From Blepharisma stoltei ATCC 30299 (Eukaryota; Protista; Ciliophora), in the NCBI GenBank assembly GCA_965603825.1, contig CBFDEM010000043.1:186001-250000 (forward strand): a stretch of 64,000 bases of DNA. Reading direction: 5' to 3'. The notes beneath the pieces were generated by a model that saw nothing but the letters and a program-made list of their open reading frames with translations, was not told where the DNA came from and ran no database searches. The position numbers were made by a program, and so were the translations under genes. This document shows positions 16,318-49,495 of this stretch, piece after piece (within the stretch, counting starts at the first letter, position 1; the number at the start of each line of letters is the position of its first letter).

Positions 16318-16740
16318 TGTTTCACCAAATTATTGATAAGGAATATGATTGCCAAATGGAAATTTGGTATATTAGATGGCTGCTAAAATTATATGTTTAT
16401 TATTTTGAGATGACTCTAGTCAAGATAGCAGCTTTATTCAAAATATTTGTCTTAGTGGTACTTGCATATAAATGAATGATTGAAGAATGATTTGAATAAA
16501 GAGAAATGTGAAACGATTTTATGAATGATATGATTAAAAAGCTAGCTCCTCAGACTTATAATTCAATAAACTTCTATTGATAAAAATTATAGCTGATTTC
16601 AAGCTTATAAGTAATTAATATGGTGAATCTAAAATGTAAATATTTATTTTCTCTAAAAGTCATCATGATTTCAAAATAAATAATTTGAGCTGCATTTGAA
16701 AGATTTGTCTTATTTTAGTGTAAATTATTACGAATTACTT

Positions 16741-23372: not shown

Positions 23373-25532
23373 ATGGAAAATTTACAAAGGCTTTGGTGGG
23401 ACGAAGAAACTATCCAAAATTATCATGTATTGAAAAAGTTCAACTATTGAAGACTTGAATTATCAGCTATTGCGATTATTCTGTTTTCAGCTGGGTATCT
23501 TATATTTGATTTTGAATGCTGAGGGTATGTAGAGCTTTGCCTTAAAATGGGTTTGGTTCAGCTTTTAATATATATCTCAGTTGTATTTTTCGAAAATAGA
23601 GGACCCTATATAAGAACTTTATTTGTGGTTGCTCTTTCGGAGTATAATTGCTTTATTTGGTGGCTCCTAGGGCAAAGCCAATATAAGTCAGCAAAATTGT
23701 TGCTGTCCAATGTTGCTCTTTCGTATACAAACATATTCGAATGGCCTTTTATATTAAGTCCATGAATAAGAGGATTTATTTTATTCAAACACTTAATTTT
23801 TTGGCATTATTATAGCTATTACTTCGAAGAAACAGAGGCTCAATATATGCCCCATTTAATATCATTTTTATTAATATGGCTTTGTGATCTATCCAACAGA
23901 AATTCAAGAAAAAGCTCATTTGAAAGATTTTTATCCAGAAAGAAGTTGGAAAGTGCTGAAAAAAGACTTAGCGTCATTTTTAATCTATTTCCTGATGGAA
24001 TTTTGATACTATCAGAGAACAAGTCGATTTTATATGTCAATGCCATTACTTCGCAATTTTTAGAATGCAGCCAAAACAATATAATTCCAACTTTATCAGC
24101 AATTGAGTATTGTCAAGGTAAAAAATATTCCCATTTATCAAATTCTAATAGACTTATTGATGATATCAATCTTGTGAAAAATTTGCAGCTTAATCAGCAA
24201 GTTGTACTGGGATTAAGCCAAACTGAGTCACATAACTTAGAATGGCGAGTACAAAAAGTTCTATGAGATGATCAAGAAGCAGCATTATTGACAATTAGAG
24301 ATGCAAACCACATAATTAAGTTGGAGCAGTCCATCTCTGACAACAAGCTTAAAAATATTTTATTAAGATCAGTATCTCATGAGCTGAGAACTCCAATAAA
24401 TGCTATCACATCTCTTTCAGATGCTTTGAAAACAGAATCTGAGGCTACTGGAAAAGAGAGTTTTAAAGAAAAACTTGACATAATTTCTGTGTCTTCAAAA
24501 CTTTTGCTTTCATTAGTAAATGATTTATTAGATTACTCTAAAATTTTAGCTGGGGCTTTTTCTATTCAAAAAAGAAGATGCTTACTAAGAAGTATTATTT
24601 ATGACTCAGTAAATCTAATAAAACTCCAAGCAGAAAAGAAAGGTCTTAAGTTAGTCACTAGAATTGATCCTATGCTGCCAGCATATGTTTTTACTGATCC
24701 TCTCAGATTAAGCCAAATTTTGCTTAATCTTTTGAGCAATGCTTTAAAGTTTACAATTAAAGGGAATATAGAAATTTGTTGTATTTTATCTTCAAAAGAA
24801 AAATTAAAAGTCATTGTTTATGACACAGGGATAGGAATTGAAGAGTCACGACTTTCTAATATTTTTAAGGAGTTCAACACACAAGTCAGTACGACGATCA
24901 ATCCATCAGGATGTGGACTCGGGCTATTTATTTCAAGCGCTATTGCTAAAAAACTTGGCTCAAAATCAATTGAAGTAATTTCAGAAGTTCAAAAAGGTTC
25001 TTCTTTTAGTTTTCTCGTAGATATCCAAGAAGAAGCATTAATAGATCAGCTACCTATTGAAGAAATAAACTCTGGAATAATTTCTGAAGATCTTCCTTTA
25101 ATGCAAATCAAAGATTTTAATAGACTTATTGAAAAAGAGTATCCAAGGGTGCTAGTTGCCGATGACAATGATTTTAATAGAATTGCTATTGGGGCCTTGC
25201 TTGTCCATTATGGAATTTCTTGTAATGAGGCCTGCACAGGGAAAGAAGCTGTAGAAAGTATCCAACAAAATGATCGGAAAAAGAAGCCTTATAAACTTGT
25301 TATTATGGATGGTAGTATGCCTGAGCTAAACGGCTGGGAAGCAACTAAAGTTATCCATCAATTATTTTTTGATGGAAAAATTGATGTCTTGCCAATAATT
25401 ATTGGGTATACTGCTTTCAGCTCTGAAGAAGAACTAACTTTGTGCACTGAGTCCGGCATGAAAGAGTGCTTAATTAAGCCTTGCAATCCTGATGTTTTAA
25501 TTAGTAAGGTGTTGCATTATTTAGCAACATAA
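23373..25532 (+). CDS. Membrane hybrid histidine kinase HK1 (TM-PAS-HisKA-HATPase-REC)
   Basis: One frame with TGA=Trp; SHELRTP H-box, NLLSNALKFT N-box, DTGIGI, GCGLGL, receiver DDNDFN..MDGSMP..TA..KP. Confidence 0.92.
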
Positions 25533-26042
25533 AAATGGAAATTCTGTAAAAGCACATCAATATTTAAAAATTTTGAAAATCCATGATTTTTGTATATTTA
25601 TAATTAAATAAAAATAAAAATTTTAATTATTTTGATTATACAAAAGCTTTGATTTTATCACTTATTTTGCTTGAAAACGAAAAATCTTTCAATTTTATTA
25701 ATAATTAGACACCAAATTAGCTATAGATATTGACATAAATAAAATGGTAAAGTCTTTTTATTTTACCATCTATTAAGAAATGAGCAAAGTTAAAGCTGAT
25801 CGGGAATTTTTAGAACAAAATTCGAATATTTTAAACTTATCTATAATAAATAGATCCATAATTGGGTATAATTAGCTTTCACTAATAATCAATTATTGCA
25901 GCTTTCCCTATTTAGTTTTAAAAAGTGCACCAAACCATAAGAAAATATGAGAGAGATCAAAATTTAATAAGAGAAAGCTAGATAATAATATCACGCATTA
26001 ATTCTTATAATAATTCAAAGGTCACTATATAATTTTTTTTAA

Positions 26043-28199
26043 ATGGATAGATTAAGAAATTTGTGACGAGAAGAAGACATTGGATGCCATTATCAAGTAT
26101 CAAAACACTTTGCTTTTTTCCATCTGGCTATATTATTAATCATGTGGTGCTTAAATAGTATTTTCGAGACCAAAAACTCTTTGTTAACTTTTTATTGTTT
26201 ACCAGTAATTACATTCCAGGGTTTATTAAGCTTATTGTTCAGATTTGCCGAAAGTAAATCTATGTCTACTAAATGCTTAGTCTCAATCTTCACATCGGAA
26301 TGCAATTTCACGGTTTGGTATCTTATGAGCTTTTATGAAGAAAATCAAAATAAAATACTATTTGCGATAGCATCTTTTGCTGGGCTAAATGTCATAGAAA
26401 TGCCTTTTATTAAATCTTTTTGGATTAGAGTGCTGCTGATTTTTAAGCATCATTTTCTGTGGCATTTTATTCCAAAATTCACTGGGAATAACGGGTCTGA
26501 TATTTATTCAGAATCCAATTTTATGCCAATTATCGCGATATTTTTATGTGAATGGCGTGTATATATGATGAGGGAAAAATCATATGAAAGATTCGTTTCG
26601 AGGGTAAATCTCGAAAAAGCTGAAAAAAGATTAAAGCTTATTTTTAATCTATTTTCAGACGGGATTTTAATAATTTCAGAGCAAAAAGAAGTCTTATTTT
26701 CGAATTTGAATTTGACCAAGCTTTTAAATTGTAGCATTGAAGAAGTGATTTCGTTTTTGACGAATACTGAATATTGCCAAGGAAGAAAACAGTCAAATTT
26801 ATCAAATACAAATAAGCTTATTGATGATATTAACCTTATCAGGACATTAGATATGAATCAAGAAATTAATCTCGGATTAAGCCAGCATGGAGATTTATAT
26901 ATAGGATGAAGAGGACAAAGAATTTTATGAGAAGAACAAGATGCAGTCCTTTTAACTGTAAGCAACGCTAATCATATTATTGAATATGAAAAAACAGTTT
27001 CAGATAGCAAGCTGAAAAATGTTCTTTTAAGGTCGATTTCTCATGAATTGAGAACGCCAATAAATTCAATCATATTTTTGGTAGAATCTATCAAAGAAGA
27101 GTATTCAGCATCAGGTAATGAAAAATTACAAAGCAAGCTGAATATAATTTCTGTTTCATCGAAAATCCTATTATCATTAGTTAATGATTTGCTTGATTAT
27201 TCTAAAATATTGGCTGGAATATTTTCAGCACAAAAAACAGATGTTTCGCTATGGAATTTTATTCATGAAACAGTTCAGCTAATTCAAATTCAAGCAGAAA
27301 AGAAAGGTTTGAATGTTTTCATAAGGATAGATCCAAATTTGCCAAGTCATGTTTTCACCGATCCTTTAAGACTTAGTCAAATTTTGCTTAATTTGCTAAG
27401 CAATGCACTTAAATTTACTCTAAAAGGCTGCATAGAGATTTGCTGCATTCTTGATAAAAATCAACAACTCAAAATTACTGTAAAAGATACTGGTATTGGA
27501 ATTACAAAAGATAAACTTAGAGATTTATTTAAAGAATTTGCAACACACTTTGATAGTGCTTTAAACCCAACCGGATGTGGGCTAGGTTTATTTATATCAA
27601 ACATTATAGCCAAAGAAATAGGTTCAAAAACAATTGACGTTAAATCAGTGCCAAACGAAGGTTCCATTTTCAGTTTTTCTATTGATATTTTTCGAAATTT
27701 CCCTCCAGCTCAAACGTTCATTGACGATGATTCTACATCAGATAATATTTTTGAAGAAAAAGCCTTAATAATGACCAAGGATTTCAATAAGGTAATTAAA
27801 AATCAATTTACTCAAGTCTTGATTGCTGACGATAATGACTTTAACCGCATAGTACTCGGAACCTTGCTTTCTAATTACAATATTCTTTACCACGAAGCAT
27901 GCTCAGGAAAACAAGCTGTAAAGTATGTGCAGGATATGGACGAAAAAAAGAAACCCTATAAGCTTATTATTATGGATGGTAGCATGCCTGAGCTAAATGG
28001 TTGAGAAGCTTCTAGGGCTATTCTTGACCTATATGCTGAAGGAAAAATATCCAGTCTGCCTATAATTATTGGATACACAGCATTTACATCAGATATCGAA
28101 TTATCACTTTGCATCAGGTCTGGCATGAAAGAGTGTATTATAAAGCCATGCAATTCTGAGCTTTTAATCAGCAAAATTAAGCATTATTTGCCAAGATAA
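26043..28199 (+). CDS. Membrane hybrid histidine kinase HK2
   Basis: Same motifs; continuous frame from ATG 26043 to TAA 28197-28199 with TGA=Trp. Confidence 0.92.
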
Positions 28200-28294
28200 G
28201 CTCAATAAATATTTTTTTAAAAATTAAAAATTAGCATATACAGCTAAATTTAGCAATTGATTTCTTTTTAAATGCTCTCTTATTCGTGTAATAA

Positions 28295-30460
28295 ATGGAA
28301 AAAGAAAGAAGGCTTTGATGGGAAGAAGAAGTGAATGAAAATTACAGGATTTTAAAAAAGGTTAATTACTCACGATTAGTTCTTATATCAATTTGCTGGG
28401 TATTTTATATAACTGGGACAATCTGGCTTTCTTGTGATTGAAGTGGCTATATAATATTTTGTGCGAAAATTTCATTTGCACAGCTTGTGGTATGCATTAT
28501 TATGGAGTTCTTAGAAAATAAAGGAGCATTTGCCAAATCATTTTTCGCGATTTTGCTATCAGAATTTTCTTGCTCTATGTGGTGAGTATTTGGAAGGGAA
28601 GCTTTTAAGTCTTCTGAGTTGCTGTTCTCAAATGTTTCTCTAGCTTATACAAATATATGTGAATGGCCTTTTATTCTAAGTCCTTTCTTTAGAATTGTAA
28701 TTCTTTGCAAACACGTATTTATGTGACACTATCACAACTATTATAAGTGGGGCTTCGATTTAAGAATAGAGGAAACAATGTCGCACTATTTATCAATTTT
28801 ACTTGTTGTGATGTGTGATTTATATATCCGAAATATAAAGGCGACTTCATTTGAAAGGTTCTTATCTCGTAAAAACCTCGAGAGGGCAGAAAAAAGGTTT
28901 AGTGTTATTTTTAACTTATTTCCTGATGGAATATTAATTCTGTCTGGAGCACACTCAATTTTGTATATAAATGCAGTTATGACAAGATTTTTAGGCTGCA
29001 GCAAAGATAGAGTAGTTCAAACCTTATCAACAATTGAATATTGTCAAGGCAAAAAGTACTCACATTTATCAAATTCAAACAAGCTTATAGACGATTTAAT
29101 ATTAGTTCCTAGCTTAGAAGTAAATCAAGAAGTAGTCCTCGGATTAAGCAAAATCCAAAATTCAAATCTAGAATTCCGGGCACAAAAGGTTCTATGGGAT
29201 GACCATGATGCGATTTTGCTAACTGTCAGAGACGCTAACCATATAATCAATCTAGAGCAGTCAATTTCAGACAATAAGCTTAAAAATGTCCTTTTAAGGT
29301 CAGTTTCTCATGAATTAAGGACACCAATAAACGCAATTACTTCTCTATCTGAAGCTCTTATGAGTGAGCCAGAAATTGTGCAAAATAAGAAATTTAAAGA
29401 AAATTTAAATATTGTCTCAGTTTCTTCAAAACTTTTGCTTTCTTTAGTAAACGATTTACTAGATTATTCAAGGATTTTAGCTGGAGCTTTTTCTGTACAG
29501 AAAACTAATTGCTTAATTCGAGCTATTGTACAGGATGCGGTGCAGTTACTGAAAACTCAAGCAGAAAAGAAAGGACTGATTATTTTTTCAAGAATTGATC
29601 CTCAGATGCCTGCGTATATTTATACAGACTCTTTAAGACTTAGCCAAGTTATTTTGAACCTTTTGAGTAACGCCTTAAAATTTACACTTAAAGGGCATAT
29701 TGAGATCTGCTGCTTATTAGTTACAAAAGGGGTAATAAAAATTATTATTAGTGACACAGGAATTGGCATAGAGGAATCTAATTTGCCAAATTTATTCAAA
29801 GAGTTTAATACCCATACCAATCAGACCATCAATCCAACTGGATGTGGCTTGGGGCTGTTTATTTCAAATATTATCGTCAAAGAGCTTGGCCCAAAGCCAA
29901 TTGAGGTCAGTTCTACTCTTGGTGAGGGCTCTTCGTTTAGTTTTTTTATAAATATTCATGAAGATGAGCTCGCACAATCCTATTATGAAGAGCTTCATAA
30001 TAATATAACCTCTGAAAATATTTCTCAAATCGTTCCAAAAGATTTCTCTAAATTGATAGAAAAAGAATATCCACAAGTGCTAATAGTTGATGATAATGAT
30101 TTTAATAGAATTGCAATTGGTTCTTTATTATTACATTGCGGTATTTTATATAATGAGTCGTATACTGGAAAAGAAGCAGTCAAAAAAATTCAGGAAAGCT
30201 GTAGAATTATGAAACCATATAAATTGGTGATAATGGATGGGAGCATGCCTGAGCTAAATGGATGAGAAGCAACAAAAATGATCCATCAGCTATATTTTGA
30301 TGGAAAACTCAGCAGTCTGCCAATAATAATTGGGTACACAGCATTTAGTTCTGAAGAAGAGCTAAATTTATGTATTGAGTCTGGAATGAAGGAATGCTTG
30401 ATTAAACCTTGCAGCAAAGAAGTTTTAATCAGTAAGGTGTTGCACTATTTATCATTATAA
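28295..30460 (+). CDS. Membrane hybrid histidine kinase HK3
   Basis: Same motifs; continuous frame with TGA=Trp. Confidence 0.92.
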
Positions 30461-30585
30461 TTTATATTATATTTATTAATATTAAAAATCAAGACTATTA
30501 ACTATAAAGATTTTTATTATTTACAAATTATTGTTACTTTTGAACTTATAAGATTTTTGTCAAATAATTTACATTAATACAATAA

Positions 30586-32750
30586 ATGGAAAATATACGA
30601 AATTGTTGGCGAGAAGAAGAAGTAAACGAGAAATACCAAGTTATCAAAAAATTCGCGTACACACTATTACTTATCATTTTTGTGGTAGTTGCATTCAATC
30701 TACTATGTGGAAGAAATCATGATCTGCTGCTTTCATATATTCCCTTCGATTTATTGCATATAATTGAATGCACAGCAATTTGATATGGGGAAAATAAAAC
30801 TGTTGCTGCCAAGTCATCAATTATTATACTGTCATCAGAATTGAACTCCACTATGTGGTTCCTAATGGGCGCTTTTATTTCAAAGGAAACAAATTATTTT
30901 ATGTGTTCTCTCTTTTGCCTCAATAAACTTCTTTGAGTGGCCAATTATTGAATCTTTTTGAATAAGGAGTTTTATCCTACTAAAGCACTTTTGTTATTCC
31001 TACTACATCGAGTATTTTACAGCAGGCTTAGATATCCTATCAATTGAAGCGGGGCTTTCACAAATGATTCTGGTTTTAATTTTTTTATTGTGCGAACCTA
31101 CTGGCGACAAACAAGAGAAAAGTCATTTGGGAAGTTTTCATACAGCAAAACTATAGAAAAAGCTGAAAAAAGATTAAGTTTAATTTTTGAGCTATTTCCT
31201 GATGGAATTTTGATAATTTCTAGTGACCATAAAATTTTATTTTCAAATGAAAATCTTATCAAACTTTTAAATTGCAGCCTGCAAGAAGTTATTCCTTTAA
31301 TAAATTCAATTGAATATAATGAAGGCAAAACATACTCTCAGTGAAATGTTTCAAATAAGCTCATAGATGATGTTAGCTTAATTCAAAATTTGCAACTTAA
31401 TGATGAAATTTTGCTTGGTATATGCCAAATTGGCCAGTGCAATCTTGAATGAAAAGGGCAAAAGATATCATGAGACGATGAAGATGCTATCTTATTAACT
31501 GTTAGAAACGTCAATAATTTAATCCAATTGGAGCGAACGATATCTGATAGTAAATTAAAAAATGTGATATTAAGATCGGTTTCACATGAACTCAGGACTC
31601 AATAAACGCAATATCTGACTTTGTGGAAGCTTTGAAAGAAGAGCCAGAAATTGCCTGCAATAGCGCTTTAAGTAGCAAGCTAGAAATTATTTTAATTTCC
31701 TCAAAATTACTTCTTTCATTAGTGAATGATTTGCTTGACTACTCAAGGATTTTGGCTGGGGTATTTTCAATAAAAAAGTCTAAATTTTTATTGAGAAATG
31801 CTATTCATAATGCAATGCAACTAATAAAAATCCAAGCAGAAAGGAAAGGCTTAAGAATTATTTCAAGAATAGACCCTGAGCTGCCAATATATATATTTTC
31901 AGATCCTCTAAGATTTAACCAAGTACTATTGAACCTTTTAAGTAATGCTTTAAAGTTTACTCTCTCAGGTTTTATTGAAATTGCATGCATTCCATGTGCT
32001 GATGGAAACATGAAAACCATAGTGCAAGATACAGGAATTGGTATTAAAGAATCTAAGATTAAAAATTTATTCCAAGAATTTCAGACATATCATCAGGAAT
32101 CTTTAAATCCAACTGGTTGCGGACTAGGTTTATATATTTCTAATATTATTGCTAAAGAATTAGGATCAAAATCCATTAAAGTGAAATCGAAAGAAAATCA
32201 AGGATCGTGTTTCAGCTTTTCGATTAATATTAAAGAGGATATCAAAGCATTAGAAAATAGGGAAAAAATAATGAAATACGATTATTCTTTGTCAGCAAAT
32301 CTTCTAGAAAATAATTTTCAAATAGTAATAAAAGATTTCAACGCAATAATGAAACAAGAATATCCAAAGGTATTAATTGTCGATGATAACGAATTTAATA
32401 GGATTTCGCTTGGGTCAATTCTTTTAAGCAACAATATATTGTATAGTGAAGCTTGTACAGGAAAGCAGGCTGTAAATAATATTGAAGAAATGAGCAAGAA
32501 GAAAAAGCCATTTAAATTAGTTATTATGGACGGAAGCATGCCTGAACTCAATGGCTGAGATGCAACAAAACAAATTTTTAATTTGCATGCTGAAGGTAAG
32601 CTTGATGATTTACCTACTATAATTGGGTATACAGCATTTACTTCTGATCAAGATATAAAAATGTGTATAGATGCAGGGATGGCAGACTGCATTATCAAGC
32701 CTTGCAGTTCTCAAGTCTTGATGAGTAAAATATTTGAATACTTGAAATAG
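30586..32750 (+). pseudogene. Hybrid histidine kinase HK4, frameshifted (pseudogene or assembly indels)
   Basis: Versus HK5: 2-nt deletion ~30891, 1-nt deletion ~31098, and 1-nt deletion ~31600 giving SHELRTQ-TAA (31603-31605). The kinase/receiver part is intact in another frame. Confidence 0.75.
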
Positions 32751-32985
32751 TGTTGAAATTTTGCTGAATAGTAATTTCACATTTTTATATTTACTAAATT
32801 TGTTATTCTTTTTATAAACTTCAGAAATCCATTTACTGCTTCAAAAAAGTCTTCTTGATTAAGATACTTGGAGATTTAGTTTTTAATTTAATGTGCTTAA
32901 ATTATTAAATAATCATAGTTATTTTATGTTATTCTCTTTTTAGATTATAAAGAAACTACTGTTGTGCTGAATGCCTTTATCTCTT

Positions 32986-33585
32986 TCTATTCTATTCTAT
33001 TCTATTAAATATAACAGTGCAGGCACTGTTGAAGCTCTTATGAGCTTTTAAACAATCAATCTGTAATTTTAGCTTGTTTTGGTTGTTGCTTCAGGTATCT
33101 GGTTGCATTCTCCTCTAGGTAGCATCAAGACCTATCTTTTAAAATCTCCACATGAAACTTCTTAATTGCTGCATCTGCTTTCCTTACCTTCGACAATTCT
33201 CCCATTGCAATAAGTCGCGCCACCTGTGTTTCGTATCTTGCTCCGTAGAGCACTACTTGCAGTCAGTCCATTTCCTGTCATTCGACTCCTACATCCATGA
33301 GCTGTTTTTGTAGTATCTGTCTGAGTCTATCATACTTCACACACTCCGTCATTACGTGTGCTTCAGTTTCTTCTACCCCACACTCGTTACACCTGTCATC
33401 CAATGCCAGGTGTCTCAGTTTAGCATTCGAGTCGCAGTAATTAAATCCAGCCCTTAACCTATGTATTGCTCCAATTGCATTTCCATTGTGCTGATTGAAC
33501 TGGACGAATGTTGGCTTAGCCGTTGCTGCCTTTATCTCTTTCATGTCACTTCACCTTTTACTTGCTAATTCGCACGCGCAGTGCT
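32986..33585 (-). mobile_element. 5'-truncated LINE fragment, same family as 18601-22766 but diverged
   Basis: NQHNG.AIGAIHRLRAGFNYC..NAKLRHL shared with the long element; CNECG..ETEAHVMTEC knuckle; (AATAG)n tail at 32986-33005. Confidence 0.9.
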
Positions 33586-34221
33586 AGTCCTTTTAGATGG
33601 TCTGAACTCACTATCTGAAAGTCAAAATGGTATGCTCCTTTCTCCACTCCAATAAGGTTATCTTAATGAAAAATTTAAGAAAGATTCTAGTCAGTTGGGT
33701 TAAAATATACCCAGAACCATATATCAGCTCTGAATAGCGAGACGGTGAATCGTCCGTTAGAACTTAACTGCCTCAGTCCAAGAACGGGCTCTCTTCTCCA
33801 GCACCTAAGAAGTGCCACTTCTCCCTACTTGGTCATAAGACCCACTTAAGAATCAATCCCTTTATTTTACGGATCGTTAGAGAAGTTTCAAACTCTAGCG
33901 TCCAGCCATTTTAAGTTTGTGTCTATTATTAAACCAATCTTAAAATAATATTCGCATAGATTTTTGGACATTATATCCTTTATATCATAAATTAATTATT
34001 AATTATGCGAATTAAATATAATAACTTTTTTAAATTTAGTTTCGAAATAAAACACTTATTATCCCCTTAGAACCCTATTCAAAGTAAGTGATTGCTATGC
34101 AACTACTTCGAAACTGCTCGAAATCTAAAAGCTCTATATTTTATAAATTACTGCCTAATTTGGGCATAGTATTGATTTTGCAAATTTATTAATGAATATG
34201 ATTTTTTGTAAAGAATTATAA

Positions 34222-36393
34222 ATGGAAAATTTACGTAGTTCTTGGTGAGAAGAGGAAGTAAATGAAAAATATCAAGTTATCAAAAATTTCGCATACACAG
34301 TATTGAAAATCATTTTATTCGTTATTGCATTCAACTTATGGTGTGAAAAAAATCACGATATGCTATTCACGTTTCTTCCATTCGACTTATTACATATATT
34401 AGAATGTATTGCACTTTGGTATGGAGATAATAAAAATAAAGCCATAAAGTCTTGAATTATAATACTATCCTCAGAGCTGAACTCCACTATGTGGTTCCTA
34501 ATGGGAGCTTTTATTTCAAAGGAGACAAAAATTATTTTATGCGTTCTCTCTTTTGCCTCAATAAACTTTTTTGAGTGACCAATCATTGAATCTTTCTGAA
34601 TAAGGAATTTTATCCTACTAAAACACTTTTTCTATTTCTATTACATCGAGTATTTTACTGTAGGCCTGGATTGCTCAGCAATTGAAGGAGGATTTTCACA
34701 AATGATTTCAATTTTTATTTTTTTATTGTGCGAACTGAACTGGCGACAAACAAGAGAAAAGTCATTTGGAAAGTTTTCGTATAGAAAAACAATAGAAAAA
34801 GCTGAAAAACGATTGAGTTTAATTTTTGAGCTATTTCCTGATGGCATATTGATAATTTCTAGTGACTATAAAATTTTATTTTCAAATGAAAATTTAATAA
34901 AGCTCTTAGGATGCAGCGCACAGCAGATACTTCCTTTACTAAATTCAATTCAGTATATAGAGGGAAAGAAATATCTGCAGTGAAATATATCAAATAAACT
35001 TATAGATGATGCTAATTTAATTCAAAATTTGCAGCTTAATGATGAAACTCTGCTTGGAGTGTGCAGAATTGGCGAATTTAATTTGGAGTGAAAAGGACAA
35101 AAAATATTGTGAGATGATGAAGAAGCCACATTATTGACAGTTAGAAATGTCAATAATTTAATTCAGTTGGAGCGAACATTATCAGACAGTAAATTAAAAA
35201 ATGTTATATTAAGATCGGTTTCACACGAACTTAGAACGCCAATAAACGCTATTTCTAATTTTGTCGAATCATTAAAAGAAGAGCCTGAAATTGCTTGTCA
35301 TGATGAATGGAATAGTAAATTAGACATTACCTTAATTTCGTCTAAACTACTTTTGTCACTAGTAAATGATTTGCTGGATTATTCAAGAATTTTGGCTGGA
35401 GTTTTTTCAATAAAAAAGTCAAAATTTTTATTAAGAAATGCAATTAATAATACAATACAATTAATAAAAATTCAAGCCGAAAGAAAAGGACTAAAAATTA
35501 TTTCAAGAATAGATCCTCAGCTACCTGTGTATATATTTTCAGATCCTTTAAGATTTAATCAAGTTCTTTTGAATCTACTAAGTAACGCATTGAAGTTTAC
35601 AATTTCAGGCTTTATTGAGGTTACTTGTTTATCATGCGCTGATGGAACTATGAAAACAATAGTGCAAGATACAGGAATAGGCATCAAAGAATCAAAGATT
35701 AAAGACTTATTCCAAGAATTCCATACACAATATCAGGAAACCTTAAATCCAACTGGATGCGGACTAGGTTTATTCATTTCAAATATAATTGCCAAAGAAC
35801 TAGGCTCAAATTCAATTGAAGTTCAATCAAAAGAAAGCCATGGATCATCTTTTAGTTTCATCATTGATATCAAAGAGAGTATCCATAATGGGGCAATAAA
35901 CAATTCAGAGACCTTAACATATGATGATTCTTTGTCAGAAAATCTTTCAGAAAATATTTTTCCAATAATAATAAAAGATTTTAATGCTGTAATGAAACAA
36001 GAGTATCCAAAAATTTTAATTGTCGATGATAATGAATTTAATAGGATTTCGCTTGGATCAATTCTTTTTAGCAACAATATATTGTATAGTGAAGCTTGTA
36101 CAGGAAAGCAGGCTGTAAATAATATTGAAGAAATGAGCAGGAAGAAAAAGCCGTTTAAATTAGTTATTATGGACGGAAGCATGCCTGAACTCAATGGCTG
36201 AGATGCAACAAAACAAATTTTTAATTTACATGCTGAAGGTAAGCTTGATGACTTACCTACGATAATTGGGTACACAGCATTTACTTCTGATCAAGATATA
36301 AAAATGTGTATAGATGCAGGGATGGCAGACTGCATTATCAAGCCTTGCAGTTCTCAAATATTGATGAGTAAAATATTTGAATACTTGAAATAG
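34222..36393 (+). CDS. Membrane hybrid histidine kinase HK5
   Basis: Continuous frame from ATG 34222 to TAG 36391-36393 with TGA=Trp. Confidence 0.92.
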
Positions 36394-37068: not shown

Positions 37069-39228
37069 ATGGAAATTTTGCATCATTCTTGGTTCGAAGA
37101 AGAAGTAAATGAAAAATATCAAACAATAAAAAGATTTGCGTTTACCCTATTTTTGGTTATCGCAATAGCAGTTTCTATCAATTTATTAGCAGGAAAAAAT
37201 CATGATATTATTTTGGAATATCTTCCCTATGATTTATTACATATAGTTGAATGTATAGTTCTATGATATGGAGAAAACAAAAAAAGCCTTTTAAAATCAA
37301 GAATTGTAATAGCTGTATCTGAATTTAATTCTATTTTATGATTTCTAATGGGAACTACTAATTCAAAGGAATCTAAAGTTCTTTTATGCACCCTTTCTTT
37401 TGCATCGATAAACTTTTCTGAATGACCTCTTATATATTCATTCTGGATTCGGAGCTTAATTATGATTAAGCATATCTTTTTCTTTTATTATTTTGAATAC
37501 TTTACTGTAGGCTTGGATGTGATATCGGCTGAAGGAGGATTTTCTCAAATGATAGTAATTTTGATTTTTTTATTGTCTGAGCTCAACTGGCATCAGACAA
37601 GAGGGAAATCATTTGGAGAATTTAAGCACAGGAAAACTATAGAAAATGCTGAAAAACGACTGAGTTTAATTTTTGAATTATTTCCTGATGGAATTTTGAT
37701 AATTTCACATAACCATAAGATTTTATTTTCAAACGAAAACTTAATAAAGCTATTAGATTGTAATATACAGCAGGTAATTTCTTTGCTAAAATCAATTCAG
37801 TATATAGAAGGGAAAAATTATTCACAGTGAAATGGTTCAAATAAACTAATAGATGATATTAATTTAATTCAAAATTTTCAACTTAATGTGGAAGTATTAC
37901 TTGGTATATGCAGAATTGGGGTATATAATTTAGAATGAAAAGGGCAAAAAGTACTATGAGATGATGAAGAAGCTATATTATTGACGGTTAGGAATGTCAA
38001 TAATTTAATCCAATTGGAAAGAACAATATCAGACAGTAAATTAAAAAACGTTATGCTAAGATCAGTTTCTCATGAGTTGAGGACACCAATAAACGCTATT
38101 TCAAATTTTGTTGAATCATTAAAAGAAGAGCCAGAAATAGCTCGTCATAACGATTGAAACAGCAAGCTAGATATTACATTAATTTCATCAAAGCTACTCC
38201 TGTCATTAGTCAACGACTTGCTAGATTACTCAAGAATTTTGGCTGGAGTTTTTTCAATAAAAAAGTCCAAATTTTTATTGAAAAATGCTATTAATAACGC
38301 AATACAGTTAATAAAAATCCAAGCTGAGAGAAAAGGCTTAAAAATTATTTCACGAATCGATCCTGAAATCCCAGCATATATATTTTCAGATCCATTGAGG
38401 TTTAATCAAATCCTTCTGAACCTATTAAGCAATGCTTTAAAGTTTACAGTTTCAGGTTTTATTGAAGTTACTTGTGTGTCATGCTCTGGCGGAACTATGA
38501 AAACCATAGTGCAAGATACAGGAATTGGTATCAAGGACTCAAAGATAAATGATATATTCAAGGAGTTTAATACAAGCCACCATGGAAATTTAAATCCGAC
38601 TGGCTGTGGTCTGGGCTTATTTATTTCAAATATTATTGCTAAGGAATTAGGCTCAAAATCAATTGAAGTCCAATCAAAAGAAAATCAAGGATCATCTTTC
38701 AGCTTTTCTATTAATATAAAAGATGCTTTCCAAGATAACTTAGAGATAATGCAATATGATGATTCTTTTTCAGAAAATCTTCCAGAAAACAATTTTCCAA
38801 TCGTAATAAAAGATTTTAACGCTGTAATGAAACAGGAATGTCCAAGAGTTTTAATTGTCGATGATAATGAATTTAATAGGATTTCACTTGGATCAATCCT
38901 TTTTGGCAACAATATATTATATCGTGAGGCTTGCACTGGAAAACAAGCTGTAAATTATGTCGAAGAAATGAGCAGGAAAAAGAAGCCATTTAAGCTAGTT
39001 ATTATGGATGGAAGCATGCCTGAGCTTAATGGCTGAGATGCGACTAAAATTATTTTTAATTTGTATTCTGAAGGAAAAATTGATGATTTACCTACGATAA
39101 TCGGATATACAGCATTCACTTCTGATCAAGATATAAAAATGTGTATTGATTCAGGAATGACAGATTGCATTATCAAGCCATGCAGCTCTCAATTCTTGAT
39201 AAAAAAAATAATAGAATACTTGCAATAA
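37069..39228 (+). CDS. Membrane hybrid histidine kinase HK6
   Basis: Continuous frame to TAA 39226-39228 with TGA=Trp. Confidence 0.92.
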
Positions 39229-39660
39229 AATGTTGTTGGAACAAATCAAAATTTTGATATGATTTTTAATTAAAAAAAACCTTAAATAGCTTTTTAGTAA
39301 AATTATTATCAGAATTGAATAAAAAAAATTCTCGAAAATGGTGCAATTTTCATCATATAATAAGATAGTTCTTATTTACATTTGAATTTATTCAATATAT
39401 TTAGATAGCTGATCCTAAAATTTAGAAGGCGATCTTAATTAAAAATAATGAATATTTTCTTGTAATTTTTAAATAAAAATTTAAATATTCTTTTAAATCA
39501 ATTATATTTTTAAAGTTTTGCATCAAATTTAAGTCTTAAATGCTAAATTCAGCGACTAAGATCTAATAATATTATTCTTTTTCATAAAATTTACATAAAA
39601 CTATTAAAAAGCATCTTATCTTAAGAACTGAATTAACTGAACGGAGCAATAAAAAATTAA

Positions 39661-41823
39661 ATGGAAAAGCTACGAAAAAGTTGGTGGGACAATGAAGTTC
39701 AGGAGAAATATCAAATCATAAAAAGATTTCAGTATTTAAGATTTCCTTTTGTTTTATCGTTCTGGTTCACTATTTGGATTATCCAAAATCAATTATCAAT
39801 CCAATGCTTAAAATTAGAGCCTGGATATTATGTATATTTATCATCACAATTTCTTATATGTTTCTTAATACAATATGTGCAGAATAAAGACAATTTTTAT
39901 AAATCACTTCTAGGAATTGCATTATCCGAATACAATTGTCTATTGTGATGGATAATGGCAAGGGGTGATTTCAAAACCTCAAAACTCTTGCTCTCGAATA
40001 TTTCTTTGTCGTGCATTAACATTTGTGAGTTCCCATTCATAAAAACATCATTTTTCAGACTCTTAGTTTTAGCGAGACATTTAATAATGTGGCAATATAT
40101 AGACTATTACTCAGGAAGTATCGAATTAACACTTGATACTATGCCTCATTTAATGGCAGTTCTAAATGTTTTTCTTTGCGAAACTCAATGCCGCAGAGTT
40201 AAATTTTTTTCATTTGAGAGGTTTTTGTCAACCCAAAAATTAGAAAGCATGGAGAAAAGGCTCAGTGTCATTTTTAATCTTTATCCTGATGGATTAATGG
40301 TATTGTCACAATCAAATACTCTGCTGTATTCTAATGCAATTATCACAAAGTACTTAGGATGCAATACTGATCAGATTGAAAAGATATTGGTAACTATTGA
40401 ATATGCACAAGGGAAAAAATATTCTGAGTTTTCTGATTCAAGTAGGCTCATTGATGATATTAATTCTGTCAAAAATTTACAATTGAATCAGCAAGTATTG
40501 CTAGGGATAAGCCAGCTTGGAAATTTAAATTTAGAATGGAGAGCTCAAAAAGTCCTATGAAATGAAGAAGAGGTAGTATTGCTAACTGTGAAAGACATTA
40601 GTCATATCATAGAGCTAGAAAAATCTATCTCTGACAATAAATGAAAAAATGTGCTTTTGAGGTCAGTCTCTCATGAGCTGAGAACACCTATAAATGCAAT
40701 TTCTACTATTTCTGAGTCAGTAATGTACGACTCAGAAGTTTTACTATCTAAAAATTTTGCAACAAAATTAAATATAATTTCAGTCTCTTCAAAGCTTTTG
40801 CTTTCTCTTATAAATGACTTATTAGACTATTCAAGAATTTTAGCTGGATCCTTTTCTATAGTAAAATCAAAATTCCAGCTGACAAATACAATAAATACCA
40901 CTGCCCAATTAATTAAGCTTCAAGCAGAAAAGAAAGGGGTTAAGCTCACCATTAGGATTGACCCTCAAATTCCTGAGCATATTTATTCAGATCCTTTAAG
41001 ATTCAGCCAAATTTTGCTAAACCTTTTAAGCAACTCTCTAAAATCGACCATAACTGGGTATATCGAAATATGCTGCATTTTATGTGAAAAATGAAAAATT
41101 AAAGTAACAGTAAAAGATACTGGGATTGGTGTTGAAGAAACCAAGCTTATCAATATGCAAAAAGAATTTAAATTACATCAAAACCTTACAATAAATCCAA
41201 CCGGGTGTGGAATTGGTTTATTCATTTCAAACAAAATATCTAAAGAGCTCGGCACAAAACCAATTGAGGCAAGTTCTGTTATTGGCTTTGGATCATCTTT
41301 TAGCTTCTATGTTGACATTTCAGAAGAAAAAGCCATTGACGAGCTTAAATTTGACGATGATATTTCTGAATTTACTTCAGAAGAAATTCATCCAATTTCA
41401 ATAAAAAATTTCAAAGAAATTATCAGTGAATTTCCACAAATTTTGATTGTAGATGATAATGAATTTAATAGAGTTGCTTTAGGAACACTTCTAGCTAGAA
41501 AAGGGTATCTGTTTGATGAAGCCTGCACTGGGAAAGAAGCAGCAAGGAAAATTAAGGAAAATGATAGCAAATCAAAGCCTTATAAATTGGTTATAATGGA
41601 TGGGTGCATGCCTGAACTAAATGGTTGGGATGCAACAAAGCTTATTAATCAAATGTACTTTAATGGAAAACTAAATAGTTTGCCAATCGTAATTGGGTAT
41701 ACTGCTTTTAGTTCTGATGTGGAACTAGGAATGTGCATTGAATCTGGGATGAAAGAATGCCTTATTAAACCTTGTGACCCAGAGATATTAATTTCAAAAA
41801 TATCAAATTATCTTTCATCTTAG
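39661..41823 (+). CDS. Membrane hybrid histidine kinase HK7
   Basis: ORF pieces are all in one frame, separated by TGA only; variant N-box NSLKST. Confidence 0.9.
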
Positions 41824-42303
41824 CAATGAAATATTCAATTTAATATGTAATTAATTATTGTCTTTATATCAGTTATTTTATAAAGTTTTTAACAAAAACA
41901 ATTGGAGAATTTTTTTATTTAAATTTTTTGAATTTATTTAACTCGTGATCATTTTCTATTATATCTAATTGATTTAGTTTATAAGTTTTACTTTGAAATT
42001 TCAACGAAATTTCAAAATGGAAAAACTTTAAAAACGATTTTAAAGCTCTTTAAGCATGATAAGTAATTGTTAATTAATTAAAAAATATCTATTTATGAGA
42101 TAAATTTAACTTAATCTAGAAAATATTCCTTTCTTGTCCTTTTACAAAATTCAACAAATTTAAGTAAAAACTAAAAAAAGTCTTTATATAAAATTAATTA
42201 GATAATATTAGCATTTGCCAGCATAATAAAAAATTAAAATTCATCTGATTTTTTTGATAGGTACTTTTTTTATATTAATTTATTTACCAATATAAAATCA
42301 GTA

Positions 42304-44475
42304 ATGGAGAAATTACACAGAATTTGGTGGCAAGAAGAAGTAATCGAGAAATATAAAGTACTTCAAAAATTCCTTTATTCTCGTCTATTACTTGTCGTCT
42401 CGTTTTGGGTTGTTCTTTGAGTTGCTCAAATTGCAGTTCCTATTAAATGATTGAGGCTTGAGTCTATTCATTTTGTATATGGGATCTCTCAACTTGCCAC
42501 TTGTTTTCTTGTAAAATTAGTTGAAAATAAAGAGGAACGATGAAAATCAATTTTAGCTGTCATACTTGCTGAATGCAACTGTATTGGCTGGTGAGTAATG
42601 GGTTTGTATGGATACAAGTCTTCGAGGGTTTTGCTTTCAAATCTTTCGCTTACTTGCATAAATATTTGCGAGTGGCCTTTTATTCATGCTTCATGGTTAA
42701 GAATTTTAATACTTTGCAAGCATTTACTACTTTGACATTATATTGGGTATTATTATGGAGAAATAGAAAACACTGGAGATACAATGCCTCATCTTATGGC
42801 TTTTATGATCATTATTTTATGCGATAACCATTGTAGTCTTCAAAGGAAAAACTCTTTTGAGAGATTTATTTCAAGAAAAAATCTTGAAAATGCAGAAAAG
42901 AGGCTTAGTGTAATTTTCAATTTGTTTCCAGATGGATTTTTAATATTATCCAAAGAAAAGCTTATTCTTTATTCCAATCAAATTTTAACGACCCTTTTAT
43001 TGTGCAATTTGAACCAAGTAATTCAAAAACTCACAAGTATTGAATATTCCCAAGACAAAAAATATTCCCATCTATCAAATTCCAATAAACTTATTGACGA
43101 TATAAACTTGGTGCATAATTTACAAATAAATCAGCAGGTGATTTTAGGTTTAAGCCAATCACAAAACATGAATTTAGAATGAAAAGCACAAAAGATTTTA
43201 TGAGATGAAGGAGAAGAAGCAACCCTATTAATAGTAGCAAATGCAAACCACATCATTGAACTAGAACAAACCATATCAGACAACAAATTAAAAAATGTCC
43301 TCCTGAGGTCAGTTTCACATGAGTTGAGAACTCCTCTTAACGCTATTATTTCTTTATCAAACTCCCTTTCTAACGAAAGAGAAATCGCTATAAATAAAGA
43401 AATGAACACAAAATTAAACATCATTTCAGTTTCTTCAAAACTTCTCCTTTCACTGGTAAACGATTTATTGGATTATTCAAGGTTCTTAGCTGGTGCTTTT
43501 TCTATACAAAAATCAATGTTCTTGATAAGAAATGCAATATATGAAGCTGTACAGTTAGTAAAGCTGCAAGCCGATCAAAAAAAATTGAAAATATTTGTTA
43601 GGATTGATCCGAATATCCCTGATAGTTGCTATTCAGATTCATTAAGATTAAGCCAAATTTTGCTTAATTTATTGTCAAATGCTCTGAAATTTACATTTGA
43701 AGGATATATTGAGGTCTGCTGCTTATTAAATTCAACTGGCAAGGTGCAAATAATAGTAAACGATACTGGAATAGGCATTGAGAATTCTAGAATGTCAAAT
43801 ATTTTTAAAGAATTTAACACACTTACAAACCCAATAATAAATCCGTCAGGATGTGGACTAGGGCTTTTTATATCTAATTTAATTGCTAAAGAGCTTGGAA
43901 ATGAGCCAATCAAAGTTCAATCAGCTCCAGGAAAAGGATCATCTTTCTGCTTTTTTGTTGATATTTTTGAAGAAAACCCATCTATCGAAAATGCGAATTT
44001 TGAAGAATTACCTGAATATTTAGTACCAGAAGAGGCACCTTCTATAAAAATTAAAGATTTTAACGAATATATAGAAAAAGAATATCCAAAAGTTTTAATT
44101 GTTGATGACAATGATTTCAATAGAATTGCTCTTGGAGATTTATTACGTCATTATGGGATTTTGTATGATGAGTCTTGCACTGGAAAGCAAGCTGTAAAAA
44201 AAGTAGAGGAAGCTAATGGAAAGAATAAACCATATAAAGTCGTCGTGATGGATGGCAGCATGCCTGAATTAAATGGCTGAGATGCAACGAAATTGATTTA
44301 TCAATTGTTTTATGAAGGAAAGATTCTGATTTTGCCTAGCATTATTGGATATACTGCTTTTACCTCTGAAATGGATATTTCACTATGCATAAATGCAGGC
44401 ATGAAAGAATGTCTGATAAAACCCTGCAATCCAGGAGTTTTAATTGAAAAAGTATCAAAATACTTATCTTTATAA
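42304..44475 (+). CDS. Membrane hybrid histidine kinase HK8
   Basis: ATG 42304 (MEKLHRIWWQEE), continuous with TGA=Trp. Confidence 0.92.
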
Positions 44476-45181
44476 AAACTTGATGAAAAAATTATAAATC
44501 TAAATTTTTATAGGATTATAAACAAACCAACTATTTGGACACTAAAAAGTGCGGCCTACGCTGGGATATGCTGAGTAAAAATGGCACGTGACCTTCCTAA
44601 ATTCTTTTCTCTTTAAATTCTGGCAAACTCACCTAGCCCAATAACCAGCTCTCTGGGCTAGAGTCACCCTTTGTCAGCTTCTTTGATCATCCAGATAAAT
44701 GAATACTATGTGAGATATAAAAACAGTCTAAAGATCTGGTAGGAGGAGAAAGCATTCGGGGATAAATATAATTATCTTTTCGTTAAGGCATCACCAAGCA
44801 CTAAAGCCTACTCCAACCAGCTAGCAAAGATACAAAACTTTCAGCATATAGGGACAGGTCTTACCCACTCCAGTAATTCGTCCTCCATTAGCATCATCAT
44901 CCTTAAAAAAATTATAAGGATATCCCAGTTCATTATGTAAATAAAATTTACTATTACCGCTTCTGCTTTTTATATTGCAAAATGGCCATTTTATATTATG
45001 AATATCGCATAATTTAATAAACCTAATTCAAAGTGTATTAACTCCTTTATCACCTTGCCGCAAAAGAATTAATAATTATAAATTTTTGATAAATTATGCT
45101 AATTAAGAACTTATATCAAAATACTATAATTTTAATATAGACATGGCATTCAAACAATAATAAATAAAAAATTCTGTAATT

Positions 45182-45676
45182 ATGAAAGACTCACCGATTT
45201 TTTTCCAAATTAACACGACACAAAACGATTCCACTGAAAATGACATGAGAGGAGGTTCCTCGTTAGGTGACCTCCCTTCAAAATTTTCAAAGACTTCTTC
45301 AAAGTATGTTATCCAACCAAAATCAAGTAGCAAAAGAAATAAATCCAATAAAGGGTGTGCTGTTTTGCCATATAACGAGATCCATAACCAAGTAATTGAT
45401 GAAGATATCGAAGAAGAACGCAAATTCAATCATGCAGAAACAGTAAGAGCGAAGCCAAATGATACTATATTCAATGAATTAATTAACAGAAGCAAAACAA
45501 TGACAGATCGCCAAGAAAACAATAAGAGGAATGTAAAAGTATGCAAATGCAAGAGATGTGGCAGGCTTTCTTTCATTGAAAATGATGTCTGCTTTTACTG
45601 TCACCGCTCAGCAAGCTCAAACTGGAAGTCATTAGTTTTTTCATCAATTATTTGCTGCTGCTGGTGCGCAAGCTAG
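45182..45676 (+). CDS. Small protein with C-terminal CxxC-x10-CxxC zinc ribbon and CCCW tail
   Basis: CKRC..IENDVCFYC..CCCWCAS; paralogue of 46605-47138. Confidence 0.8.
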   Translation: MKDSPIFFQINTTQNDSTENDMRGGSSLGDLPSKFSKTSSKYVIQPKSSSKRNKSNKGCAVLPYNEIHNQVIDEDIEEERKFNHAETVRAKPNDTIFNELINRSKTMTDRQENNKRNVKVCKCKRCGRLSFIENDVCFYCHRSASSNWKSLVFSSIICCCWCAS

Positions 45677-46604
45677 TATATTTGAATAATTTAAAGTTTA
45701 ATAGCTTTTCATGTTATTTAAGTAAGTGTTTTTCCTAAAATTAGATGTAAATCATTTATTGAATGACATTTAATTGACTGCGAAAATGTTATCTGATTTC
45801 AAATTATATTGGGTTATTATCGTTCAGCTTCTTCATAAGAAAGATAATTAGTTAAAATTTGTGCTCGATAGTAACCAAATGAGCTTTAAGATTACCTCTT
45901 CAAACTTGATAGACACTAAGATTCAAGTATACATTTCAAGCTAATCCAAAGTTCAGATAATGAAAAATGTTTACTCGAATGATTTATTTATCGCAGCAGG
46001 AAATAAAAAAATTATTGCGGTACAGGCACTATAGTAAAGTGCACTTTGATAAAATTTACAAGAATTCATAGATGGCATAATCAAAATTATTTTAAAATAA
46101 CAATCTATCTATGCTTAAATAATAAACATTATAAGAAGTGAACGTCTCAAAATTATTGTATTTGGTATGATGTTGACAAATCAACAATGAAGCCAATTAT
46201 AGGAAATAGCTGCTGATTGGGTCCATTACTAGCTAGACAAAAATTACTCAATTATTTACAAGCCCAGGATCAATATTTAATAAGCTCATCTTGCAGTTGA
46301 AGATTATAAACTTTACTCTTATTCAATCTCAAATTTTATACTAAAAATTTAGCTGATTTTAAAACTTATTCACTTGTTGAAAAAATTCAAAAATTTAAAT
46401 GCATATCTTAATTACCTGCCTAACCGGCTGCCATATTTCTTCACATAAGCTTAATGTGATAATTTTTATCATCAAAATTTATGAGCCTAAATTATTTTTG
46501 CGCCCATCAGATTTATATTAATTTATTACATCCATTTTAAGTTTACAAATCCTTTAACCTTTTAGTAAATATTAATTGTTTAAAATATAAGAATCCGTAA
46601 AAGC

Positions 46605-47138
46605 TTACGTGCAAAGCCAGCAGCAGCAATAGGCAGATGCACGCGCAAAAGATTTTAGGTATGAGCTCTTGTTGCAAACAGTTTTACAATGACAACAAAT
46701 GTCATTTTCTATATATGAAAGTTTTTTGCATTTCCCACATTTACTAATTCTGACTGTTCTTGGTCTTGCTTCTTCGTGGTGATTTCTTGTAGTTTTACTA
46801 TGGGTTATAATCGTTTCCAGCTTATCACTTGACCTTTCCCTAAACGTTTCTGCATATACGAGCTTATGCTCTTCGTCTGGTTTTTCAATGAGATTTTTAT
46901 TTTCGCTATTTATATATGGAACAACTGCATTCCCCTTGTGAGATTTAATATTTCTATTTTCAAAAATTCTTGGCGAATTTTTTTTTGACTCAATTACATA
47001 TTTTGCAGAATTTTTTGAAAATTTGTGGTTATGCTCGGTAGGACATGGGTGTGCTTCTGAATTGATTGTATTGGAAAGATTCTGCTCAAAAGTTGGCACC
47101 GTGGTGAGCTGATTATGATTAATGATTGGATCTTCCAT
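46605..47138 (-). CDS. Paralogue of 45182-45676 (zinc ribbon, CCCW tail)
   Basis: Shared KFSK.S.KYVI, KG.AV.PY, AET.R, SKT, CxxC..S.IEND.CxxC and CCCW. Confidence 0.8.
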   Translation of the reverse strand: MEDPIINHNQLTTVPTFEQNLSNTINSEAHPCPTEHNHKFSKNSAKYVIESKKNSPRIFENRNIKSHKGNAVVPYINSENKNLIEKPDEEHKLVYAETFRERSSDKLETIITHSKTTRNHHEEARPRTVRISKCGKCKKLSYIENDICCHCKTVCNKSSYLKSFARASAYCCCWLCT

Positions 47139-47338
47139 GATTAAAGTTATATTTTCTATTATTGAAAAATATGAAATTTGAACGAGATTTGTGTAAAATA
47201 AATACTAAATATTTAATCAATTAAATGATTTTATTTGAAGAGCTTATATAAAAATTTTTGCATCCAGAAAATTCATGTCAAATTTCCTTCAAGACTTCCA
47301 TTTTTGCAGATTTTAAAGGCTTTTTTTTATCAAAAAAT

Positions 47339-49495
47339 TTATATGGATAAATAGTTAGTTATTTTATTTATCAAAATTTCAGAATTACACGGTTTTATAA
47401 TGCATTCTTTCATGCCTGACTCTATACAAAGTGATAGCTCTGCATCTGATGTAAAAGCTGTATATCCAATGATTACTGGTAAATTATCAATTTTTCCACT
47501 AGAATATAAACCTAAAATATTTTTTGCTGCCTCCCAACCATTTAGCTCAGGCATGCTTCCGTCCATAATAATTAACTTATAAGATTTCCTCTTTTTATTC
47601 ATCTCTAATACTTTTGTAATAGCTTCCTTTCCTGTACAAGCCTCATTAAATAAAATTTTATAGCTTGAAAGTAATGATCCAAGAGCTAATCTATTAAAAT
47701 CATTGTCATCTACAATTAAAACTTGTGTGTTTTCTTCTTGTAAAAGTCTATCAAAATTGCTTATAGTTAAGTTGAGTTTATTTTCTTTCGGAATTTCACA
47801 TATGGTTTCATTTTCGAACAGCAAGTGACCTTGTGTGTTTTGATCAAAAATATTTACACAAAAGCTAAAGCTTGATCCTTTATAAACTTTAGACTTAACT
47901 TCAATAGAAGATCCTAACTCTTGAGCTATAATATTTGATATTCATAGCCCAAGCCCACATCCAACAGGATTTAAATCTTTGTCTAAATATGTGCCAAATT
48001 CTTTAAATAAATTTTTCATTTTTTCTTCTGAAATCCCAATTCCAGTGTCTTTAACCGTAATTTTTAACTGATTTTTTTCATTTAACATACAGCGGATTTC
48101 AATTGATCCTTTTAATGTAAATTTTAGAGCATTGCTTAGCAAATTCAATAAAACTTGGCTAAGTCTCAGTGGGTCTGTGTGTACATTTATTGGTAATTGA
48201 GGATCAATTCGGGTGAAAATTTGTAAACCTTTTTTCGTTGCTTGAATTTTGATGAGCTGAATGACTTCATAAATACTATTCCATAAAGCAAAATTTGATT
48301 TCTGAATTGAAAACATACCAACAAGGACTTTGGAATAGTCAAGTAAGTCATTAATAAGAGATAGGAGATGGTTTGTTGAAACCGAAATTATATTTAATTT
48401 TTCTTTCCAAGGATGGAAAGGTGAAATCTCAGGATCATTTTTTAAAGATTCAGCTAATGATTTTATTGAATTTATCGGAGTTCTAAGCTCATGAGAAACA
48501 GAGCGTAAAAGGACATTTTTCAATTTATTATCAGATGTTGTCTTTTCAAGCTGAATAATGTGATTCACATTACTGACAGTTAAAAGTATCCCATTCTGCT
48601 CTCCTCATAGCACTTTTTGTGCCCTTCATTCTAAATACGTTGCCCCACATTTGCTTACCCCTAAGCTTATTTGCTGATTCAATTCCAAAGAGAGGATTAT
48701 TTTTACATGCTCAATAATTTTATTTGAAGGCGACAGCTCAGATTGCTTTCTTCCTTGGCAATATTGGAGATCTGAAATAGTCGGTATAAGTTGGGCGAGC
48801 TCACAGTTCAAAAGCCTTAATAAATTTTCATTTGAATATAAAATTTCATTTCTTTCTGAAATAATTAATATACCATGTGGAAATAAATTAAAAATCAAAT
48901 TCAGTCTCTTCTCTGCATTTTCTAGATTTCTCCTCGATAAAAACCTTTGGAAAGATCTCATCATCATACGCTCACAACGAATTTCACAGAGACAAGCAAC
49001 TAGCAATGAGACAAAATGGGCATTAGATGCAAAGTTAATTGAGATATTTCCCATAAAGTACTTACCATAATACCACAGAAAAAAAAATTTTGCTACTACG
49101 AATATTCTCAGCTTGGGACATGCAATAAAAGGAAGTTCGCAAAAGCCAATAGTGGCGAATGAAATGATAGAAAATATTACTTTGCTATCTTCTTCAACTT
49201 CATAAATACTTATAAACTTCCATATGAAGCAATTATACTCCGAAAATAAAATTGCTACTAAACACTTTATGTTAGAATTTCGGTGCTCAAATGAAGCTGT
49301 AAAATGACATAGTAGTCAGTGAACCCCAGCCAGAATAAAAAATAGGATTGAATTTTCGTTTCTGAGAAACTGAAAACAAATAACTAGACCTCAAAGCGGT
49401 ACCAATATTCATTGGAGGCCAAATGAGATTTTTTTAATCATTTGAAAGGTGCCGTTTATTTCTTCCTCCCATCATAGCTCTTTCATTCTATCCAT
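47339..49495 (-). CDS. Membrane hybrid histidine kinase HK9 (inverted)
   Basis: ATG 49495 (MDRMKELWWEEE); one frame to TAA at 47339 with TGA=Trp. Confidence 0.92.

Follow-up and report, generated by a model that had tools for sequence, protein, structure and literature searches.

A cluster of membrane hybrid histidine kinase genes in Blepharisma stoltei and the predicted six-helix fold of its sensor domain

The kinase array and its gene products

We describe an array of nine membrane hybrid histidine kinase (HK) genes, one of them frameshifted, in a stretch of 64,000 nucleotides (nt) from the ciliate Blepharisma stoltei (C43:186001-250000; the window, to which coordinates without a contig refer), together with its relatives in the genome searched, which comprises 41.46 Mb on 64 contigs. 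In B. stoltei UGA is read as Trp and introns are 15-16 nt long (PMC9942806). With UGA as Trp, unbroken open reading frames (ORFs) of 718-723 amino acids (aa) start at 23373, 26043, 28295, 34222, 37069, 39661 and 42304 on the forward strand (+) and at 49495 on the reverse strand (-), and where members of the family are aligned, TGA codons face Trp far more often than any other residue. The standard code was ruled out since the ORFs then break into pieces, and so was reassignment of UAA/UAG, the approximately 720-aa ORFs being obtained with UGA as Trp only. Moreover, our translations of g1, g3, g7 and g8 are identical to public B. stoltei proteins. An earlier account of the window, made from the DNA letters and their ORFs (the sequence-only reading), had held that the full proteins are hidden under the standard code, which is indeed the case; it had also counted nine genes of approximately 720 aa, eight on + and one on -, of which eight are intact while the fourth carries frameshifts.

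The intact genes on the + strand are g1 (23373-25532, 719 aa, public protein P0005), g2 (26043-28199, 718 aa, with the phospho-His at residue 334 and the receiver Asp at 645), g3 (28295-30460, 721 aa, P0004), g5 (34222-36393, 723 aa), g6 (37069-39228, 719 aa, sister to g5), g7 (39661-41823, 720 aa, P0003) and g8 (42304-44475, 723 aa, P0002), and g9 (47339-49495, 718 aa) lies on the - strand. They share one architecture, with an N-terminal six-helix membrane domain (the sensor), a coil, a PAS domain, HisKA, HATPase and a receiver. The public annotations P0010 (g9) and P0008 (the gene at C63:207k) begin downstream, so that little or nothing of the sensor domain is included, P0010 being 542 aa long and without it.

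HisKA (PF00512), HATPase_c and Response_reg score above the Pfam cut-offs in the window genes. Residue conservation was counted in 55 uninterrupted family ORFs, with intron-bearing members left unjoined and excluded from the local alignment. All 55 have the H-box His, the N-box Asn, the G1 Asp and the receiver Asp, and 54 of them the receiver Lys; HATPase_c has its N, G1 and G2 boxes, and the C-terminal receiver its acidic pair, phospho-Asp, Ser/Thr and Lys. The coil and cytoplasmic PAS (g8 residues 190-325; 42871-43278, +) were assigned by profile and fold: the PAS region scores under the Pfam cut-off, resembles the PAS of WalK in a profile comparison (E 4e-6) and gives a model with a predicted local distance difference test (pLDDT) value of 92.9, which Foldseek matches to PAS structures (E 5e-5, probability 1.0). 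Pfam, profile and fold hence agree with the common architecture proposed in the sequence-only reading, and its conserved phospho-His and Asp are found throughout the family ORFs. As judged from these domains and residues, the window genes are hybrid HKs with predicted phosphotransfer activity.

The frameshifted copy, g4 (30586-32750, +), is nearest to g5 and was compared by DNA alignment, unrepaired. Relative to both g5 and g6 it has lost 2 nt near 30891, 1 nt near 31098 and 1 nt near 31599, the last within the H-box; tiny introns as the cause of the breaks were ruled out since these bases are missing in g4. It has no in-register stops, its ratio of nonsynonymous to synonymous substitution (dN/dS) against g5 is 0.11-0.18, and amino-acid changes private to g4 are somewhat more numerous than those private to g5 (33/60 vs 16/57, p=0.06). 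The last approximately 350 nt of g4 and g5 are 97% identical, and a retrotransposon fragment sits directly behind g4. Together these features suggest that g4 is probably a young pseudogene.

Predicted fold and conserved residues of the sensor domain

The sensor (g8 residues 1-205; 42304-42918, +) was modelled with AlphaFold2 from an alignment of 97 rows. The model, with a mean pLDDT of 95.7, consists of six helices (residues 2-44, 54-72, 78-102, 105-126, 130-151 and 161-204), the last of which extends as the signalling coil. When compared with 48,161 representative chains, Z-scores of at least 8 were obtained only for ImcA (11.4) and the adenylyl cyclases (ACs) AC9 (11.4) and AC5 (8.8), each over approximately 190 of the 205 residues, and the remaining chains were mostly partial helix matches (Z of 7.4 or lower). 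After rescoring of a Foldseek list, ranks 1-11 were occupied by ACs and ImcA, e.g. AC9 with Z 13.7 at a root mean square deviation (rmsd) of 3.7, AC8 with 11.6 and Rv1625c with 7.8; by Foldseek's own scoring AC8 has a TM value of 0.63 and E 0.36. A shape search of a structure atlas gave one eukaryotic cluster with TM 0.64 and otherwise values below 0.5. A membrane domain of six helices is known for ImcA (PMC10904736), and with AC9, AC8, AC5, Rv1625c and ImcA alike the predicted fold corresponds along the entire domain and into the coil that follows helix 6; these proteins differ from the Blepharisma sensor in sequence (approximately 10% identity, rmsd 3.7-5.5 Å), and the output is an HK in Blepharisma and a cyclase in the ACs.

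By language-model features the nearest named clusters are the bacterial sensors MASE8, MASE6, MASE7, MASE2, MASE11 and 6TM_PilS (scores 0.89-0.95). None of the Pfam hidden Markov models, MASE and 6TM_PilS included, hit the 97 aligned sensor members, with a Pfam copy from which some models may be absent. The sequence-only reading had been unable to assign the N-terminal domain to a family; this holds with respect to sequence, for which no characterised family was matched, and no longer with respect to fold. On the model, the sensor probably adopts the AC/ImcA-type six-helix fold, a relationship at the level of fold only. The B. stoltei genome has approximately 40 cyclase genes of its own.

Residues conserved across genera are (g8 numbering) W8, W9, K81, E90 (96%), K139, H140 and W144; Glu90, Lys139 and Trp144 are kept family-wide (E90 in 54/55) and His140 is present in 40 of the 55 ORFs. 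Several motifs highlighted in the sequence-only reading did not generalise: the Cys of 'SE.NC' (C93) is a subclade trait (16/55), as is C122 (8/55), and the acidic residue of 'lCE/D' is mostly Asn across the family (38/55). The suggestion that intramembrane Glu, Cys and His form a ligand or metal site is thereby weakened, since family-wide conservation does not extend to the Cys. If, as we infer, both ends of the sensor are cytoplasmic, E90 and K139 share a similar depth in the middle of the membrane, and a buried ion pair is therefore as likely as a ligand site. Variability is highest in the outer loops and lowest in the inner (cytoplasmic) halves and the coil, and the surface of AC8 follows the same outer-variable trend (PMC12414865).

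Family expansion, divergence and neighbouring genes

Searches with the sensor, the kinase core and HisKA gave 62-64 loci each, mostly at the same places and many in tandem clusters. Nearly all HKs of the genome share the six-helix-PAS-HisKA-HATPase-receiver architecture, and the six-helix sensor was found on HKs only. In six divergent members (L034, L050, L052, L053, L054 and L056) the N-box is interrupted, at one common position, by an intron of 15-16 nt that the window genes lack. In the tree a single subclade of 14 genes (support 100) contains the window genes and three from an array on C63; within it g1 is sister to the gene at C63:207k and g8 to that at C63:212k; the rows P0017 and P0040, labelled 'other', are B. 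stoltei genes. The C63 array shares with the window a small gene with a Cys-rich tail, a kelch-like gene on the upstream side and, downstream, a kinase (61054-62493 and C63:244255, 65% identity), and because of these common flanking genes the array is older than the segmental duplication. Broken copies or fragments of family members are also present on C63, C1 and C34. The approximately 63 paralogues, the tandem clusters, the broken copies and the duplicated sister array support the view that this family of membrane sensor kinases expanded by birth and death, as the sequence-only reading had proposed.

When 1.84 billion proteins were searched by HMMER with the sensor profile, 55 hits were obtained, from Blepharisma, from clusters that include proteins of the Fabrea salina transcriptome, and from ciliate-like proteins on gene-dense eukaryotic contigs. 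No bacterial, Tetrahymena or Paramecium protein was identified among these 55.

Mean identity among the eight intact window genes is 32% for the sensor, 54% for PAS, 68% for HisKA, 63% for HATPase and 65% for the receiver, in line with the earlier impression of a more divergent sensor. In seven sister pairs with usable dS, mean dN/dS is 0.31 for the sensor, 0.17 for PAS, 0.11 for the kinase, 0.32 for the linker between kinase and receiver and 0.08 for the receiver. All domains are hence below 1, with the sensor above kinase and receiver; for the sensor, domain-level values range from 0.1 to 0.54 and stay below 1 in every sister pair, with dS often saturated, and positive selection at the level of the domain was not found in these pairs. 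The copies are old (dS 0.2 to >2). As judged from these comparisons, the sensor evolves faster yet under purifying selection.

Part of its faster divergence is due to gene conversion in the 3' modules. Between the neighbours C1 639k/649k and C34 198k/201k, 38-47% of the shared-residue codons differ in the sensor versus 6-7% in the linker-receiver end (p 1e-15 and 9e-9, respectively, for the synonymous contrast), and the C33 479k/482k pair has a nearly identical HisKA tract. Counting g4/g5, conversion-like tracts between neighbours were seen three times in the receiver end (C1, C34, g4/g5) and once in HisKA (C33), and in none of these four pairs in the sensor. Synonymous divergence is thus uneven along neighbouring copies, which by sequence comparison points to gene conversion that homogenises the output modules of neighbours.

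The array is a real tandem cluster, as first described, albeit not a continuous one: a retrotransposon fragment lies between its members, as do two small genes of unrelated kind. The fragment (33038-33583, -) is the 3' part of a non-LTR (long terminal repeat) retrotransposon ORF, with 50-67% aa identity to an element at 18958-20970. The small genes, at 45182-45676 (+) and 46605-47138 (-), are paralogues; the first encodes Cys pairs and a Cys-rich C-terminal tail, and relatives of the second occur within the C63 HK array and at a single further site (C53). Three further copies or fragments lie within the C63 array. A role as obligate HK partners is unsupported, the small genes being present in two HK arrays and at one other site versus approximately 63 HKs. 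Three tandem genes for secreted lysozyme-like proteins of approximately 210 aa each, which we take to be of the GH25 type, are found at 13480-16329 (-). A GC-rich stretch at 18958-22778 (-) holds a non-LTR retrotransposon-like element with an RVT_1 domain and a repeat-rich ORF before it, and such elements have been reported for the B. stoltei genome (PMC9942806).

Relay partners and interpretation of the family

Signalling through histidine phosphotransfer (HPt) proteins and response regulators, as the sequence-only reading had suggested, is backed by one HPt gene and a few receiver proteins. The only HPt found, at C48:358482 (L068:1396-2076), has a long charged tail whose last four residues, Cys-Glu-Ile-Ile, resemble a CaaX box, a hint that the protein may be prenylated and tethered to the membrane. 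The three receiver proteins outside the family are a single-domain receiver (C52:293307), a protein in which a receiver is joined to a NEK-like protein kinase and additional domains (C51:572648, L069:681-3101, -), which on its domains is a candidate relay output, and a degenerate HK-like protein (C23:609k, L067:1638-4226, -) with a membrane region, a PAS-like part, a kinase core without recognisable H-box and a receiver. The sensor profile did not match the membrane part of this last protein.

With an estimated probability of approximately 0.62, we interpret the array as a local cluster of a membrane hybrid HK family of approximately 63 members that also has relatives in other heterotrich ciliates, with AC/ImcA-fold sensors, input at the level of the membrane and a shared HPt. 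By analogy with known two-component systems and with CqsS, each dimer would sense an input in or at the membrane, such as a small lipophilic molecule, the lipid state or a partner protein; helix 6, the coil and PAS would carry the signal to the kinase, and phosphate would pass from His to the receiver Asp, to the shared HPt and on to a few response regulators, which may be the single-domain receiver and the receiver-protein kinase. Many varied inputs would in this way converge on few outputs. CqsS is a 6TM HK with a lipophilic ligand, and its sensor can replace the anchor of an AC (PMC4821796). The quorum-sensing kinases CqsS of Vibrio and LqsS of Legionella have the same kind of six-helix, short-loop sensor joined to a cytosolic HK (PMC4821796), in contrast to Blepharisma with a PAS inserted and dozens of paralogues instead of one. 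No CqsS structure was among the hits of the Blepharisma sensor, and the likeness is one of architecture. CqsS itself is a hybrid kinase that signals through the HPt protein LuxU.

Several results weigh against this interpretation. The Foldseek E-values for AC8, AC9 and ImcA are 0.36-0.9, and Z-scores of 11-14 are, according to the warning given with the tool, close to the range obtainable for helical bundles; sequence and profile searches of the sensor against Pfam and the PDB gave no consistent match; an outside-variable pattern is also usual for unselected membrane surfaces; and the counts of HPt genes (one) and other receiver proteins (three) are lower bounds.

The six-helix domain might instead serve mainly as an anchor, for dimerisation or as a scaffold for partners, with the input entering via PAS or partner membrane proteins and the paralogues differing in expression or location. 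The function of the AC membrane domains is still open and a role in binding interactors is documented (PMC12414865), regulation of ImcA comes from a partner protein and depends on the membrane region of ImcA (PMC10904736), the array kinases do have a PAS domain, and the sensor is hardly distinguishable from the linker in dN/dS (0.31 vs 0.32). However, a mid-membrane Glu in 54/55 ORFs and Lys, His and Trp conserved across genera exceed what a plain anchor needs, and approximately 63 divergent versions of the sensor have been kept; we regard this alternative as unlikely. Less probable still is a metal or haem site that would make the kinases redox or metal sensors. It could draw on the conservation of E90, H140 and E/Q123, on a metal-binding pocket proposed by simulation for Rv1625c and on the inhibition of mammalian ACs by haem (PMC12414865), but the Cys residues are confined to subclades, His140 is missing from 15 of the 55 ORFs, a second conserved His is absent from the sensor, and a buried Glu-Lys pair is a simpler account of E90/K139.

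That the array consists mostly of redundant duplicates under drift, or that it is an artefact of assembly, appears very improbable, even with one broken copy and a retroelement fragment inside it and more fragments on C63, C1 and C34, for the copies are old, distinct and under purifying selection, and the C63 array is flanked by the same neighbours. Moreover, several DNA runs, some of which may be the source of the assembly, contain 92-99% of the sampled words of 28295-32750 (g3-g4), which speaks against any gross artefact of assembly; the figure is 57-70% for four runs that were guessed to be RNA and may be DNA.

Within the preferred interpretation, that of membrane-level input and a shared HPt, a receptor repertoire with distinct ligands is plausible. 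Its most far-reaching form, in which approximately 60 heterotrich receptors of the CqsS/AC type would each respond to different small membrane-soluble molecules, all via one HPt, is tentative and rather doubtful. Bacterial signals, metabolites of prey or predators and possibly gamone 2 would then be candidate inputs. The last of these, a small derivative of an amino acid (PMC10892320), may be a ligand; nothing here ties it to the array genes.

The cluster itself is ordinary gene-family evolution, and HK expansion in ciliates is known in kind. Tetrahymena, too, has a large, lineage-specific set of 70-83 HKs, almost all of them hybrids; most have several hydrophobic helices and lack a known N-terminal domain, and some have PAS (PMC6324907, PMC1557398). 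Stentor has 44 HKs (10.1101/168187). These expansions have been noted since 2006 with sensor fold and input left unassigned, and we found no published fold or ligand for the HK sensors of Tetrahymena or Stentor. New here are the assigned sensor fold, an apparent funnelling into one HPt and the pattern of conversion. Placing the fold offers a ready assay in the published design of the CqsS-Rv1625c chimera, and the single HPt detected is a point at which the entire pathway could be probed by knock-down, be it in Blepharisma or in Stentor. The family is also a large natural series of variants with which to ask whether AC/ImcA-type domains are receptors. Should the receptor repertoire be real, it would constitute a eukaryotic chemoreceptor family built on a domain whose function in mammalian ACs is still debated.

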